Assembly: GCA_965644295.1 (NCBI GenBank)
Contig: CBFFRP010000429.1
Location: forward strand, 62,001-126,000
Reading direction: 5' to 3'
Length of the DNA stretch: 64,000 bases
Source of the DNA: Paraphysomonas bandaiensis
Lineage: Eukaryota; Protista; Chrysophyceae
Program-made: the position numbers and the translations under genes
Notes under the pieces: generated by a model
What the model was told of the DNA's origin: nothing
The model's database searches: none
Seen by the model: only the letters and a program-made list of their open reading frames with translations
In this document: one piece after another, positions 46,570 through 62,468 of the stretch
Layout of the letters: each line of letters starts with the position of its first letter
Position numbering within the stretch: position 1 is the first letter of the stretch

Positions 46570-47378
46570 TTATTCGAACGGTTTGCGTACCACTACAGTT
46601 GCGAACTCCCATGTACGCCAACCATGCTTGCTACTAAACTCAACCCAGGTACGCGATATATCTAAAATTTTATTTTTCTCATCGGCATCCGTACTGCAGT
46701 CATTAGGTTCCGGCAATGCCCAATTCCTCACATTGTTGTATAAGTGCATTTCGTATGCTTCTAGCGACTGCATTTTTTCGTAACATATATCACATTTATG
46801 GTTTGTAAACCACGATTTCAACTCACTGATATTGCCATAAGATGTTGGAGTTACCTGTAAATAATCTAAAAATTCCTGACACGGAGGGGATACAAATACC
46901 AATTCCCCAACAACAACATACCCCCCTGGCTTTGTTATTTGTAATATCTTTTCTATCGTTTGCGGCTGCTGATTTTCAGGTAACGCTCCAATGCACAAAA
47001 CTGCGTCGTATTGATGTGACGATAAAGCAGCATTTTCAACCCACGTTAATAAATCTGATTCACACGTTTCAATATTGTTGTGTGCGGTCTCAGGCCAATT
47101 AGAGAGAACTGTCGCCTCCCTATCAACTCCAATACCAGAGCCTCTTGGACCAGTGCATGTCTGTACAATGTGACGTAGCAGTGCCCCCCTAAATATAACC
47201 CTGCATGTTACGTATTTAACTTGCATATATCAGCTAGTGACCTTCCACATCCAAGATCCACTACCACTGCATCTTCAGGCAACACCAATGCATTAACTAT
47301 ATCTTGGACAATTTCCTCGGTATGTGGACAGGTGTAAGGGAGGTCAGAGTGACCTATTTCTGATCTCTTCTTCATCAT
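46570..47378 (-). CDS. Class I SAM-dependent methyltransferase (bacterial YjhP-like)
   Basis: VVDLGCGR|GALL across intron 47241-47189, GIGVD, YDAVLCIGA, KPGGYVVVGE. An alternative upstream ATG exists at 47444. Confidence 0.8.
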
Positions 47379-47752
47379 TACTGAAATCACTCGAGAGGGG
47401 GGGCTATATATATACCGATAGATAGATATACCATACTCTCTCATTTGTGTGTTACATCAGTCTGCAGGAGTGATGCATACACAGCACTGCTGTACGCTGT
47501 ACACCATATCCAGATATACACACACACCAGCAGCAGGAACTACAGTAGTATCTATGGTAGAATACCACAGTATATACCTACTCCTACTGCTGTCTTCTTG
47601 TGATGTGTGATGTACGGTTACGTTGTTAACTTGTGGACACATAATGTACAAGGCACTATCAATAGAGTATCTCTTATTTATCGTGAAATTGCTATCTCGT
47701 CACTTCCATAGATAACTAGTACCTATGCTAATTTACAACACGTCTATATTAA

Positions 47753-48053
47753 GATGTGTGACCCTATTAGCCACATTAAGTAGCCACGCCTAATATGTCA
47801 AGTGTAAATATCATTGATTTGTTGTATGCATATTATGGCATTATTATTCCCTATCAAGATGGTATATGATAAAGTGGGGTTACCGTTTCAAATTTGTTCT
47901 ACATCAGAATAACTTAAAGAGATGATAAAAATCTGATCAAAGCATCTAACAAATCGATTTGTTGACATATTATGCGATGCTTGAGTTGACAATTGTGCTG
48001 TTTAGGAGTGGCTGATTGCAGGTTTCTCAATGTGGCTAACATGGTAACTCATC
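47753..48053. mobile_element. Possible degenerate MITE
   Basis: Imperfect ~28-bp inverted ends GATGTGTGACCCTATTAGCCACATTAAG / CTCAATGTGGCTAACATGGTAACTCATC; no clear TSD. Confidence 0.35.
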
Positions 48054-48404
48054 CCCAGATAGCAAATAGTACTACTGTATTAACATTCTAACCCTGTCTC
48101 GAAGAGAAATAATAACGTCTATGTGCAAAATATCAATACTCAGACCCTAAATTCAAGTAGTGTCCCTACGTAGCGACTTCAGACTTAAAAATGAAGTACG
48201 TACATCTACAGTGAAATAACAGATAAAGACATAAAATGACAAAAATAACCAAAAGAAACCACGTGCAATTATAACATGCTTTACAATCGGTATGACATTC
48301 CTAGGTAGCATTTCGTTGCAAAACAGCACTCAGTATATTATGTATTTTAGCATTCTTAATTTAAAGGACATTACTATGTCAAGATCAGAAAAAAATCTGG
48401 AAAG

Positions 48405-49742
48405 TTACTTCTGAAAATCATGATTATCATTGAATGTTTCTTGAAGGTCAATTTCAGTTTCGCTCGTTGACACGAAGAATAATATACGGTCGTAATCTTC
48501 TTTGTTGGCAATACCTCTATGGATACATCCCGGGAACAGCTTTAGTATAGAGTACGGTTCCGTGACTACTTGACAGACCTCCAAATGATCGGTTTTCTCA
48601 GCGGAGAAGAGTGTGTGTGGCTCTCCAAAGTAAAGATCCTCGGTGGGAGACTTAATGGGGCCATCTGGATGGCGAACAAACTGCGTGGCATTCTGCTGAG
48701 TCATCATTGTCATCGGAATCATGAGATTGCTCACAGTAGTGCCATAATCTTGATGCCATCTCTGGTTAAGAGTACCATTCTTTGGAGACACAATGAAGCC
48801 ATAGGAGAGAATAACACGCGGCGTACTGTAAAATTCCTTTAGGAGAGAAGCCGTAAAACTTTCGACCTTGGAATGCAGTTTTGATGCAAGCCATTCAGGA
48901 TGAGTTTTCCCGTTATGGAAGAGGTTAGCCCAGTAAATTTCCTTCTGGGCACTAGTTTTGAAGTTAAATATCTTCGACGCATTGTCGAGGGCACTCTTAA
49001 GGAGGTCGACTTCGTTATCATTGCAGGAGCGCATATGGGCCACTCCACCTGAGTACGAAGCAGTGGTCTCTCTCCAGTTTTCGACTATAAATATTAGTTG
49101 ACAAGTCTCATGCCATGCGTACAACATAGCAAAAGGAGCAAGTGCATAGCACACCCAGAGCGGCATATTGAGACAATAGGAAATCGGGTAGAGTGTATTA
49201 ATCAGCCAACATGCAGTCCCAAGATTATTGTAAGATTGTGCCGGAGTTAGCCATTCTTCGACAACGAAATACCATGGGAGTTTTGACGTGTCTTGGGAAG
49301 GATAAATAGACTGTGCGCTCACAGCAAAGTCAAACAAGCCAGTCGATATTTCTACGACAGTAAATAGTACAACAAATGTAACAATAGGAGATCCGAGATG
49401 AACACACCAAATTGCCAGGCAATATTGAGCTAACAGGTCAGCTAGCCAGTCCCAACCACAACCAATAACGGTTGACTGATTGTAGTGTCTTGCAATAGGC
49501 CCATCAATCCAATCCAAAAGCACGCTTCCAAATATGAGTGTGGCGATGCAAAACTTCCATTCAGGAGCATGAAGAATAAGCACCAAGGCAACAACAGCCA
49601 TTAGTATGCGAAAGTAATCAATAAGATTGGCATAATACCACCACACATCCTTAATTGTTTTCCGTATTCGGTGTGTGATCACATCTCCAGTGCTAGCTAC
49701 AGGGCCTGAGACCCACTTCCCTTTCTGATTGATGTACAACAT
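48405..49742 (-). CDS. CDP-alcohol phosphatidyltransferase fused to a PhyH-like Fe(II)/2OG dioxygenase
   Basis: One uninterrupted ORF. DWIDGPIARHYNQSTVIGCGWDWLAD matches D-x2-DG-x2-AR-x8-G-x3-D-x3-D; C-terminal QRWHQD...IPM...ATQF...HRGIAN...DRILFF. Confidence 0.85.
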   Translation of the reverse strand: MLYINQKGKWVSGPVASTGDVITHRIRKTIKDVWWYYANLIDYFRILMAVVALVLILHAPEWKFCIATLIFGSVLLDWIDGPIARHYNQSTVIGCGWDWLADLLAQYCLAIWCVHLGSPIVTFVVLFTVVEISTGLFDFAVSAQSIYPSQDTSKLPWYFVVEEWLTPAQSYNNLGTACWLINTLYPISYCLNMPLWVCYALAPFAMLYAWHETCQLIFIVENWRETTASYSGGVAHMRSCNDNEVDLLKSALDNASKIFNFKTSAQKEIYWANLFHNGKTHPEWLASKLHSKVESFTASLLKEFYSTPRVILSYGFIVSPKNGTLNQRWHQDYGTTVSNLMIPMTMMTQQNATQFVRHPDGPIKSPTEDLYFGEPHTLFSAEKTDHLEVCQVVTEPYSILKLFPGCIHRGIANKEDYDRILFFVSTSETEIDLQETFNDNHDFQK

Positions 49743-49962
49743 CTCTCCCACTATGTATGAATATACGCCACACCTTCTCAGAATGACTGCTGATAAAACT
49801 TCGAATAGTGAACATCTTTCTCTGGATTACAAATCCACTCACTCACTCCACTCTAGCCCGTTAGTACATATGTGAGCAGAAAACATGTGATTTCCACCAT
49901 CACTCGGAAATGAGAAACATCTGGACGATCCATGCCTGATATACAGACACGTATACCTGAAG

Positions 49963-50445
49963 TGTATGTATGTATGTCTGTATGTCTGTATGTCTGTATG
50001 TATGTATGTATGTATGTATGTATGTATGTATGTATGTATGTATGTATGTATGTATGTATGTATGTATGTATGTATGTATGTATGTATGTATGTATGTATG
50101 TATGTATGTAGGTATGTATGTATGTATGTATGTATGTATGTATGTATGTATGTAGGTATGTATGTAGGTATGTATGTATGTATGTATGTATGTATGTATG
50201 TATGTATGTATGTATGTATGTATGTATGTATGTATGTATGTATGTATGTATGTATGTATGTATGTATGTAGGTATGTATGTATGTATGTATGTATGTACG
50301 TATGTATGTACAGTGTATGTATGTATGTATGTATGTATGTATGTATGTATGTATGTAGGTATGTATGTAGGTATGTATGTATGTATGTATGTATGTATGT
50401 ATGTATGTATGTATGTATGTATGTATGTATGTATGTATGTATGTA
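49963..50445. repeat. (TATG)n microsatellite, ~480 bp
   Basis: Direct reading. Confidence 0.98.
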
Positions 50446-50595
50446 TATACAGTGTGTATTATTTGTACAGCTTGTCTGCCAATGAGATGTCTGGATGTCT
50501 TTATTGTCAGTGGTTAGCTATGGCTTCGTGCGTGTTCTATTAAACGCTCCAGTGCTGCAGAGTAAACTGTGCTGCTAAGTGTACATCAAAGAGCA

Positions 50596-52095
50596 ATGAA
50601 GTCAGCTCGTTTAGTTAAGATAACTTCAAGGCGATTCTCATGTGCATGCAGCAGTAGCAGTAGCAGTAGTAATAATCTGTATGCGTTCAGTGAGGAGTCT
50701 CTTAAGCAGAAGTTATCACAGTTAGGCATCCCCTCCTTTAGAGCCACTCAAGTGCTCAACTGGGTATATGATAATGGAGTGACTGATTTTTCAGAAATGA
50801 GTACTCTTCCTCTGTCTGTGCGAGATATTATGAGAACTCAGTTTAGTTTTGGTTCGTCTGTTGTGTTGCACGAGCAGATATCTAAAGACGGGACACGAAA
50901 GAGAGCACATCAACTCCATGATGGGCAACTCATTGAAGCTGTTTTGATGCCTTATAATGATGGGCGCCGTACGGCCTGTATATCTTCACAAGCTGGCTGT
51001 GCGATGGGATGTACCTTTTGTGCCACTGGTCAAATGGGATTTTCTCGTCAATTGACCAGTGCAGAGATATTTGAACAAGCGGCAATGATAGCGTGTGAGC
51101 TAAAGCGACAAGATCAGCGTTTATCAAATGTGGTTTTCATGGGAATGGTGTGTAGCGTAGATTGTGTACACTTATGTATGTGTTTATGTTCATGATAGGG
51201 GGAACCGCTGAACAACTATGATAATGTCATGACTGCTATAGAGCAAATGCACAGTCTCTTGGGCATAGGCGCGAGACACATTACGGTGAGCACAGTAGGA
51301 ATTGCTCCGAAAATTAGAAGAATGGCTGATGATAAATTACAAGTAAGTTGTTGTGTTCGTTTGGCCAAAGGGTTTGTGACAATTGCACTGCTATATGCAG
51401 GTTGGATTGGCGGTTAGTTTACATCAAGCAAACGATGAGAACAGAAGCCGACTCATGCCAATTAACTGCCGCTTCCCGATTGCTGAGTTAATGGACTCTT
51501 GCAGGTGCCTAACTTAGCAATACTTGGCCAACTGTGATGTAAGTTACTGCTCGTAGATATTATATAGGAAAAACGAATAGGCGTATTTCGTTCGAGTGGG
51601 CATTAATTGAGGGACAAACCGACAGCCCAGAGACTGCACATGAGTTAGGAAGGCTTATTAAGGGTACTGTGTGACATTGTGACTCAATATTTTCGCCGTT
51701 TGATTTTGTGTCAGGAATGCTTTGTCATGTGAATTTGATTCCTTTGAATCCTACTGATAATTTCTCTGGAAAACCCACAAGCAAAGCATCTGTGGATACA
51801 TTTGTTACTATACTGGTAAGTAAGGTAAGCAACTGGTTATACATAATGTCATTCTTGTTGTAGAAATCATATAGCATAACTGCAACCCCCAGAGTTCGAC
51901 GAGGTAAGGCCAGCCGCATCTTGTATATGTAGTATACGATTGTCGAGCATTGGTAGCTGTCATTCTGATACCTAACTGTATGTAGGGATTGATATTGATG
52001 CTGGTTGTGGCCAACTAACTGCGGCTGTTATGAAGAAAAAAGAGAGATTAGCTTTTTTATCGAAACAACGAGAAGATATATCGAGATTTGTTTGA
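50596..52095 (+). CDS. rlmN: Radical-SAM RNA methyltransferase RlmN, probably organelle-targeted
   Basis: [25 protein letters not shown] (CxxxCxxC), VVFMGM|[27 protein letters not shown]; basic Ser-rich N-terminal extension. Confidence 0.93.
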
Positions 52096-61500: not shown

Positions 61501-62468
61501 ATGGTTAATTTTCATGGAGTATTGAGTGTATATCATATTTTGAATGTGATATAGGTTTTATGATCCACAAATGGGTTCAGTGTTGTTGGACGGGAAAGAT
61601 TTGAGGAAATTTTGCCTCAAAGATGTCAGAAAACAAATTGGTCAGTGAACTTTTAACGTTAATTTAGCATTAAAATGCACACACAGGTGAGGTATCTCAG
61701 AACACTGAACTCTTTGCTTGTTCCATTGAAGAAAACATTGCTTACGGAATGGAGCCTGGGTCTTGGTCACGGTAGTATAGCTTTTGAATCGTATTTCGGA
61801 ATAATTATGAATGTTAATGCAGTCAGGATGTTATAGCTGCTGCGAAGAAAGCATGTGCCCATGAATTTATTTGTGAGATGTCTGAAGGCTACGCCACTCG
61901 CGTAGGTGAAAGAGGGACAAGAATAAGCGGGGGACAGAAGCAGGTACAGCTTTATGGATATACAGATATTGCTGCGCGATAACATAGCTTCAGTATACTA
62001 ACTCTATTTTGCAGCGCATAGGTACACTTTTCTCCTGTGGCAATGAGAGACGCTAATAAGTACATAAATGCAGCCATAGCTCGAGTATTTCTTCGTAAAC
62101 CACGCATTCTACTTCTTGATGAAGCAACTTCCTCTCTCGATGCGGAAAGCGAAAGCAAGGTTCTAGCGATCATGCGTTGTGTGGTACACGTTATAGTAAG
62201 TGGAATATACTTGCAGGTACAAGAAGCATTGGACCGTCTCATAAGTGAAGGAGGTGCAACAGTTGTCCTCGTAGCTCATCGACTGTCGACTGTTGTGAAC
62301 GCAGATCAAATTGCTGTTGTCGGAGAAGGAAGAGTTGTTGAGATGGGAACACATGATTCCCTGATAGAAGCAGATGGAGCGTATGCAGCATTAGTGAAGA
62401 AACAACTGGCCAAACGTAACTCAGTTGTAGATGCTGATTCTGTAGTTGGTGAATATGACTGTAGCTAA
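58549..62468 (+). CDS. ABCB half-transporter (TAP/ABCB9-like) with N-terminal TM extension and internal zinc finger
   Basis: Many exons. QDVAFFD...[18 protein letters not shown], Walker [10 protein letters not shown], signature ISGGQKQRIAIAR, Walker [20 protein letters not shown]. Confidence 0.92.

Follow-up and report, generated by a model that had tools for sequence, protein, structure and literature searches.

CDP-alcohol phosphotransferases have their active sites on the cytosolic face of the membrane, and the CPT of Treponema denticola, together with LicCA, is a bacterial example of the Kennedy pathway, in which head groups are supplied as cytidine diphosphate (CDP)-activated alcohols. 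A CDP-alcohol phosphotransferase carrying an oxygenase in the same chain has, as far as we know, not been described, nor do we know of any 2-oxoglutarate oxygenase acting on a glycerophospholipid head group. Here we analyze a gene from the chrysophyte Paraphysomonas bandaiensis that joins a domain of the former kind to one of the latter in a single protein. It occupies positions 48405–49742 on the reverse strand of a 64,000-nucleotide stretch of contig CBFFRP010000429.1 (contig positions 62,001 to 126,000), further referred to as the window. Both halves of the protein come from well-known superfamilies; the architecture, the conserved gene cassette in which it is found and the likely product are undescribed. 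An already characterized fusion would have refuted the initial annotation of this gene, but no name, family model or paper describes it (a literature search for a fusion of a CDP-alcohol phosphotransferase and an oxygenase found no paper).

Domains and transcript of the fusion gene

Judging from its structural model and residue conservation, the C-terminal half of the protein is a PhyH-like Fe(II)/2-oxoglutarate oxygenase of the double-stranded beta-helix (DSBH) fold with a full set of predicted catalytic residues. The domain covers residues 222–440 (48423–49079; coordinates of all features of this gene are window positions on the reverse strand) and is connected by a conserved NWRETT linker to the sixth transmembrane (TM) helix of the preceding domain. 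For the domain analyses, the C-terminal parts were cut from an alignment of 31 full-length homologues. AlphaFold2 modeled the domain with a predicted local distance difference test score (pLDDT) of 90.4 and a predicted template modeling score (pTM) of 0.88; the respective values for the full-length protein are 90.4 and 0.75. The Foldseek search against PDB returned at least 500 matches with E ≤ 0.001. The top ones are almost all 2-oxoglutarate or non-haem-iron oxygenases, those listed being EvdMO1, AviO1, GriE, MysH, AndA, AsqJ, FtmOx1 and SnoN with E-values of about 1e-8 to 1e-7, and the one exception among the top matches listed is a chain of the trypanosomal RNA-editing complex. Z-scores from an aligner independent of Foldseek were 16.0 for AviO1 (PDB ID 4xaa; root-mean-square deviation (rmsd) 2.9 Å, 181 aligned residues), 15.6 for the proline hydroxylase H11, 13.6 for EctD, 13.5 for EasH, 13.4 for PHYHD1 (3obz) and 12.2 for human PhyH (2a1x). 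Hence, the C-terminal half does model as a DSBH domain, as the initial annotation had supposed.

The residues of the HxD...H iron triad predicted there are also present. The proposed iron ligands H330 and D332 (H330-Q-D332, 48747–48755), the proposed distal iron ligand H408 in the HRGIxN motif (HRG, residues 408–410; H408 at 48519–48521) and R419 (48486–48488), proposed to bind the C5-carboxylate of 2-oxoglutarate, are invariant in the 31 sequences, and remain so across two deeply separated clades of the family. R419 follows H408 by 11 residues and stands at the start of the model strand 419–427, DRILFF being residues 418–423. The same spacing separates H264 and R275 of human PhyH, and the role of R419 is proposed by that analogy.

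At the sequence level the domain is remote from known oxygenases. The family profile places its WHxD(Y) onto the WHRD of EasH (4nao), and other PDB sequence matches are nearly blank. The Pfam family PhyH (PF05721) scores 13–15 bits against a cut-off of 22, with E = 0.13 for the whole protein and 0.031 for the domain alone; only 3/31 family members match it at E ≤ 1, the best at 2.5e-4. As the Pfam match alone is weak, the domain was identified by its fold and residue conservation, and it is a separate family inside the PhyH-like clade, too divergent for PF05721. From the PF01066 plus PF05721 architecture suggested initially, the first component is therefore retained, whereas the second stays below threshold.

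The first component is the CDP-alcohol phosphotransferase domain, residues 36–221 (49080–49637). Pfam CDP-OH_P_transf (PF01066) matches residues 36–155 with E = 3.1e-17; the score is 63.8 bits, the cut-off being 22. Six TM helices are seen in the model (37–58, 63–86, 92–116, 121–143, 173–190 and 195–221; pLDDT about 90–98). The catalytic motif D77-W-I-D80-G81-P-I-A84-R85-x8-G94-x3-D98-x3-D102 (49437–49514) is complete in the translation, in agreement with the initial reading; in the 31 sequences D77, A84, G94 and D102 are invariant, and D80, G81, R85 and D98 are conserved in at least 90%. By its motif and modeled fold, the domain is most likely active as a CDP-alcohol phosphotransferase.

The type of this transferase is harder to read from similarity. 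The structural matches are PgsA (7drj; Z-score 12.6, rmsd 3.6 Å, 169/190 residues aligned over 35–225) and PSS (7b1k; Z-score 11.9). In the sequence search of this half against PDB only the motif region matches solved structures, and the result is otherwise nearly blank. Every specific NCBIfam synthase model tried (a set that excludes eukaryotic PIS) scores far below its cut-off: TIGR00560 (pgsA) gives 36.1 bits (E = 9e-9) against an equivalog cut-off of 109.1, NF045883 (PIPSynth) 17.4 against 170, and the archaetidylinositol-phosphate synthase model 23.8 against 180. PIP synthase 6h53 compared with the family profile shows no specific relation (E = 0.32). The stretch VWWYYANLIDYFR, residues 33–45 in the TM1 segment, had been described as a PI-synthase-like start. 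The stretch is present, and its Y37, N39 and R45 are invariant within the fusion family; the link to PI synthases is not supported, given the low scores of the PIPSynth and archaetidylinositol models.

The putatively cytosolic segment preceding TM1 (residues 1–35; 49638–49742) contains a conserved GKW hairpin formed by model strands 2–4 and 10–12, with W10 nearly invariant. Many structural matches of the full-length model to DSBH proteins begin at about model residue 24. Given these matches and the hairpin with W10, the approximately 35 residues before TM1 seem to be packed on the oxygenase in the model. Such packing would seem to clamp the oxygenase to the cytosolic face.

The two domains are encoded without interruption. 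The open reading frame (ORF) extends over 48405–49751, and the ATG at 49742 is the start favored by homologues. The resulting coding sequence (48405–49742) is a single exon of 445 codons followed by a stop codon at 48405–48407, and its ends match those of 30 full-length homologues. The encoded protein is identical to P0001 of the public collection. The window has a G+C content of about 41% and looks like eukaryotic DNA. The region 47300–49950 was compared with four public runs (X1, X3, X9 and X15); the runs are stored as contigs, so transcript ends are approximate. A 1505-nt contig of X1 is collinear with 48342–49846, with one substitution and no gaps, which corresponds to an unspliced mRNA with a 5' untranslated region (UTR) of about 104 nt and a 3' UTR of about 63 nt. 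The 860-bp intergenic region 47478–48340 is uncovered in both X1 and X3, and depth differs between the gene and its neighbor (311 vs 103). Coverage limited to genes, together with unequal depth of neighbors, is the pattern of a transcriptome. X9, a polyA marine metatranscriptome, contains two pieces of the region with at least 99% identity, and expression of the gene is thus seen in marine polyA metatranscriptomes. X15 is DNA-like, originates from another strain and spans the whole region; 5/5 indels and 14/15 substitutions fall outside the ORF. Since the X1 contig and X15 are collinear with the window across the domain junction, both domains lie on one unspliced mRNA, with neither a stop codon nor a frameshift nor an intron separating them. 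The claim of a single intronless ORF was thereby borne out by both contigs as well as by the ORF list.

Gene neighborhoods, proposed reaction and its alternatives

The scan of bacterial genomes (one per species) yielded 14 fusion loci. They belong to metagenome-assembled genomes (MAGs) of Terriglobia/Bryobacteraceae (Acidobacteria), Actinomycetes, Verrucomicrobiota, Turneriella and one Mycobacterium. In the loci L001, L003/L027, L004 and L012 a gene for a protein of about 600 residues lies at most 4 kb from the fusion. The N-terminal half of this protein is a LicC-like cytidylyltransferase (PDB 1jyk, 1e-13; 6pd1, 6e-10), and its C-terminal half is nearest to the threonine-phosphate decarboxylase CobD and to an enzyme resembling threonine-phosphate decarboxylase (TIGR01140, 1e-43 to 2e-45; PDB 3fkd, 3e-20, and 6oux, 4e-18). 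A class I methyltransferase adjoins the fusion in eight loci; its weak matches include phospholipid and phosphoethanolamine N-methyltransferases. A SET-domain protein of about 190 residues occurs in six loci and, in addition, on contigs L031 and L037, with 52% identity between loci. Among its PDB matches is BurB, a small-molecule SET methyltransferase. An MsbA-like ABC exporter also recurs beside the bacterial fusion. In actinomycete MAGs a small CTP_transf_like gene for a cytidylyltransferase of the TagD/ECT-like type begins directly after the stop codon of the fusion; next come genes for a PotD/PotA- or PhnT-like importer and the MsbA-like exporter. Two neighbors carry the labels of the NCBIfam families DVU_1551 and DVU_1556, for which a literature search found no paper.

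The two domains also occur as separate genes. On contig L031 a methyltransferase, a CDP-alcohol phosphotransferase (239 residues), an oxygenase (232 residues) and a SET protein are encoded by abutting genes arranged head to tail, and contig L037 retains the oxygenase–SET pair. Complex prediction for the L031 transferase and oxygenase returned a score of 0.00, which is evidence neither way. On contig L038 stand-alone relatives of the oxygenase form a tandem pair (91–846 and 853–1602).

The genome of P. bandaiensis encodes a stand-alone paralogue of the transferase, 229 residues long, with the full motif and no oxygenase (L018, 1441–2130, forward strand; G000:C298:446622-447311). Head-to-head with it lies a CTP_transf_like cytidylyltransferase exon of an intron-containing gene (L018, 287–706, reverse strand; G000:C298:445468-445887). 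A dedicated cytidylyltransferase is therefore encoded with the transferase in bacterial members and at this paralogue, but none was found beside the window gene. The three independent pairings, that is, the LicC-like/CobD-like fusion, the actinomycete CTP_transf_like gene and the paralogue with its CTP_transf_like exon, point to a CDP-activated small alcohol as the donor rather than to CDP-diacylglycerol plus inositol. From the CobD-like partner, the alcohol would be an amino-alcohol phosphate derived from decarboxylated O-phospho-serine or O-phospho-threonine. Further, the neighboring methyltransferases suggest N-methylation, and the MsbA-like exporter hints at a lipid product carried across the membrane.

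The explanation that best accounts for the whole is a transferase with a CDP-alcohol donor coupled to an oxygenase that adds a hydroxyl to the head group or to some portion of the lipid near it; from the sequences and models, we rate the chances of this proposal as about even. We infer the donor, the acceptor, the site of hydroxylation, the order of steps and the topology as follows. The dedicated cytidylyltransferase would make a CDP-activated donor, from which the transferase would move a phospho-amino-alcohol to a lipid alcohol of the membrane, for instance diacylglycerol, in a Kennedy-type reaction resembling the chemistry of CPT and EPT. The oxygenase, tethered at the cytosolic membrane surface beside the transferase site by the short conserved linker and the N-terminal hairpin, would then hydroxylate the head group just added, or the lipid close to it. 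Bacterial fusions would act with the phospho-serine/threonine decarboxylase-cytidylyltransferase, the class I and SET methyltransferases and the MsbA-like exporter, and together they would yield an amino-alcohol phospholipid that is both N-methylated and hydroxylated and is transported to the outer leaflet. Apparent clamping at the level of head groups, along with an iron triad of the HxD (hydroxylase) type, makes hydroxylation of the head group the most plausible. Plain phospho-ethanolamine or phospho-choline would break down if either of its carbons were hydroxylated, hence the target is probably another carbon (for instance, that of the methyl group in a head group derived from threonine) or another part of the lipid. 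The uncharacterized lipid pathway foreseen in the initial annotation gains independent support, as a head-group pathway, from the bacterial gene neighborhoods, its substrate and product being our proposals.

Several points weigh against this proposal. If the head group were simply ethanolamine or choline phosphate, hydroxylating either of its carbons would yield unstable compounds; the real head group or carbon must therefore differ. The nearest models and structures of the transferase belong to CDP-diacylglycerol users (PgsA, PSS and PIPS), though only through shared motif and fold. In the genome of P. bandaiensis, single-protein queries matched neither the NTP-transferase/CobD fusion nor the class I and SET methyltransferases of the bacterial cassette, a result that does not show their absence; TIGR01140 finds there only generic aminotransferases below its cut-off. 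Finally, in the region 128–2843 of contig L039 a stand-alone oxygenase relative lies beside genes of a CoA-transferase and an enoyl-CoA hydratase, with no CDP-alcohol phosphotransferase.

The affinity to CDP-diacylglycerol enzymes underlies the alternative that survives best, in which a transferase of the PIS/PGS type uses CDP-diacylglycerol and a soluble alcohol, the latter first made by the oxygenase from a small amine or acid. Fusions to the enzyme of the preceding step are common, and what the TM domain matches best among families and structures (TIGR00560 and 7drj) is of this type. However, the scores come from the shared motif and fall far short of the family cut-offs, and three independent associations with cytidylyltransferases would be needless if the donor were CDP-diacylglycerol. 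We consider this alternative unlikely.

The oxygenase might instead 2-hydroxylate the lipid product of the transferase on one of its fatty acyl chains. PhyH itself acts on phytanoyl-CoA, and hydroxylases of lipid A or ornithine lipids provide further analogues. The PhyH-clade fold would agree with such an activity, as would the L039 locus with its genes of CoA metabolism. Yet the conserved partners of the fusion are head-group enzymes (the decarboxylase-cytidylyltransferase, the N-methyltransferase-like protein and the SET protein), and in the model the domain is tethered at the membrane at head-group level. With these partners an acyl-chain hydroxylase seems quite unlikely.

PhyH-type oxygenases PhnY and TmpA act on aminoethylphosphonates, and the present domain shares their type of fold. 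This allows a phosphonolipid route, with CMP-2-aminoethylphosphonate as the donor and a PhnY/TmpA-like oxygenase yielding 1-hydroxy-aminoethylphosphonate lipids. The PotD/PhnT-like importer that follows the cytidylyltransferase in actinomycete MAGs would fit it, and the layout of an NTP transferase joined to a pyridoxal phosphate (PLP) enzyme in the bacterial neighbor resembles Tde1415 PntC-AEPT (PMC6697681). On the other hand, phosphoenolpyruvate (PEP) mutase (TIGR02320) was above its cut-off in none of ten fusion-carrying bacterial genomes, nor in that of P. bandaiensis; the two best sub-threshold matches have no EDKxxxxxNS motif, and the PLP domain of the neighbor is CobD/HisC-like rather than the class V AEPT of Tde1415. 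The phosphonolipid route is accordingly very improbable. Least probable of all is a soluble or polymer-bound phosphodiester, as made by DIPP synthase, tailored by the oxygenase: some CDP-alcohol phosphotransferases do use soluble acceptors, and IPCT-DIPPS models match the NTP-transferase domain of the neighbor, but the recurrent neighbor is an MsbA-like lipid exporter, and in the model a rigid tether keeps the oxygenase at the surface of the membrane.

Distribution of the family and surroundings of the gene

The word search found 46 relatives of the fusion, most of them full-length. The homologue from Naegleria gruberi has 49% identity over 98% coverage and is encoded by a single exon in the genome. 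Other eukaryotic carriers include Rotaria sordida (several proteins), one EukProt transcript and unnamed protists. The homologues are named 'predicted protein', 'uncharacterized protein' or, by JGI automatic annotation, 'phosphatidylglycerophosphate synthase'; the last is a mislabel, arising because only the transferase half passes Pfam. The fusion family is thus conserved but rare, and has been hidden from annotation since its oxygenase half fails Pfam.

The oxygenase domain itself is more widespread. Its profile, compared with 1.84 billion representatives, matched at least 286 clusters (50% identity) at E ≤ 1e-3. All nine scanned relatives of 461–595 residues are fusions with a CDP-alcohol phosphotransferase, three of three with 393–421 residues have no Pfam match, and many relatives are stand-alone proteins of 200–300 residues. 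In the class of one bacterial carrier, the carrier itself was the only one of 201 sampled genomes with the oxygenase domain. The domain is single-copy in the genome of P. bandaiensis. The ESM Atlas cluster nearest to the oxygenase by features and shape is a 239-residue hypothetical family recorded only from Nucleocytoviricota, which suggests that stand-alone relatives may exist in these viruses.

On the phylogenetic tree, built by a quick maximum-likelihood procedure, the family forms two clades parted by a long, fully supported branch. Clade A contains the window protein, Naegleria and unnamed sequences, with a small nested bacterial subclade of P0018, P0019 and P0022 (the Mycobacterium MAG). 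Clade B contains the remaining bacteria, the rotifers and the long-branch paralogue from the genome of P. bandaiensis. So patchy a distribution, with carriers among heterotrophic protists, among bdelloid rotifers and in rare soil bacteria, suggests horizontal transfer, which would represent the spread of a membrane-remodeling trait. Bacterial members of clade A, which is mainly eukaryotic, adjoin transposase genes, of the ISL3 and Tn3 types, in the Mycobacterium MAG (L003/L027, 1027–2081) and on the contig of P0019. These neighbors fit recent mobility of the cassette.

Taken with the proposed reaction, the distribution leads us to a broader suggestion, which we offer tentatively and regard as somewhat more likely to fail than to hold. 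The family may represent an unrecognized class of glycerophospholipid chemistry, in which a docked oxygenase oxidizes the head group in situ, and the product may be an undescribed amino-alcohol phospholipid, hydroxylated and, in bacteria, also N-methylated. Its source would be a Kennedy-like cassette, self-contained and horizontally mobile, that protists and soil bacteria have in common. The bacterial cassette offers a complete hypothesis for a new lipid, as it comprises a decarboxylase-cytidylyltransferase, the transferase-oxygenase, two methyltransferases (one of them a small SET protein) and a flippase-like exporter.

As for the surroundings of the gene in the window, a (TGTA)n microsatellite of about 120 copies with 94% matches occupies 49963–50446; the ATG lies approximately 220 bp downstream of it. 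The pseudo-ORFs listed with 'MYVC' repeats are explained by this microsatellite. The next gene upstream, past the microsatellite (50569–51417, forward strand), looks like a radical S-adenosylmethionine (SAM) enzyme with a CxxxCxxC motif, split by introns. About 1 kb downstream, on the same strand as the fusion, lies a separately transcribed two-exon gene of a class I SAM methyltransferase (46573–47444). It was considered as a cassette partner and rejected: it has no specific similarity to the methyltransferases of the bacterial clusters, and hence was not counted as evidence.

Comparison with known systems

The Kennedy-pathway enzymes CPT1, CEPT1 and EPT1 share with the fusion the superfamily and, as proposed here, dependence on a dedicated cytidylyltransferase (LicC-like or CCT/ECT-like) that makes the CDP-amino-alcohol donor. 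The fusion differs from them in having no detectable specific sequence relation, a minimal six-helix form and a C-terminal oxygenase. The PgsA, PSS and PIP synthases (7drj, 7b1k and 6h53) have the same fold over residues 35–225 and the same catalytic motif. In contrast to the fusion, they use CDP-diacylglycerol and have no oxygenase domain, and the fusion scores below every NCBIfam cut-off for such enzymes.

With PhyH-like oxygenases (AviO1, 4xaa; EvdMO1, 6ec3; H11; EasH, 4nao; EctD; PHYHD1, 3obz; PhyH, 2a1x) the C-terminal domain has in common the DSBH fold, the HxD...H triad and the arginine 11 residues after the distal histidine, the Z-scores being 12–16 and rmsd about 3–4 Å over 180–196 residues. 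Identity is only 8–17%, however, and the domain described here is fused to a membrane transferase or encoded beside one.

Two systems resemble the gene arrangement. Tde1415 PntC-AEPT (6pd1) consists of an NTP transferase and a PLP enzyme (PMC6697681). The bacterial neighbor of the fusion is laid out likewise, its LicC-like cytidylyltransferase being N-terminal and its PLP enzyme C-terminal, but that PLP domain is CobD/HisC-like, similar to threonine/serine-phosphate decarboxylases (3fkd and 6oux), and not a class V AEPT. IPCT-DIPPS (4mnd) is the precedent for a CDP-alcohol phosphotransferase fused to an enzyme of the same pathway. There the partner is the N-terminal cytidylyltransferase of the preceding step, whereas in the family described here the partner is a C-terminal oxygenase and the cytidylyltransferase is a separate neighboring gene.

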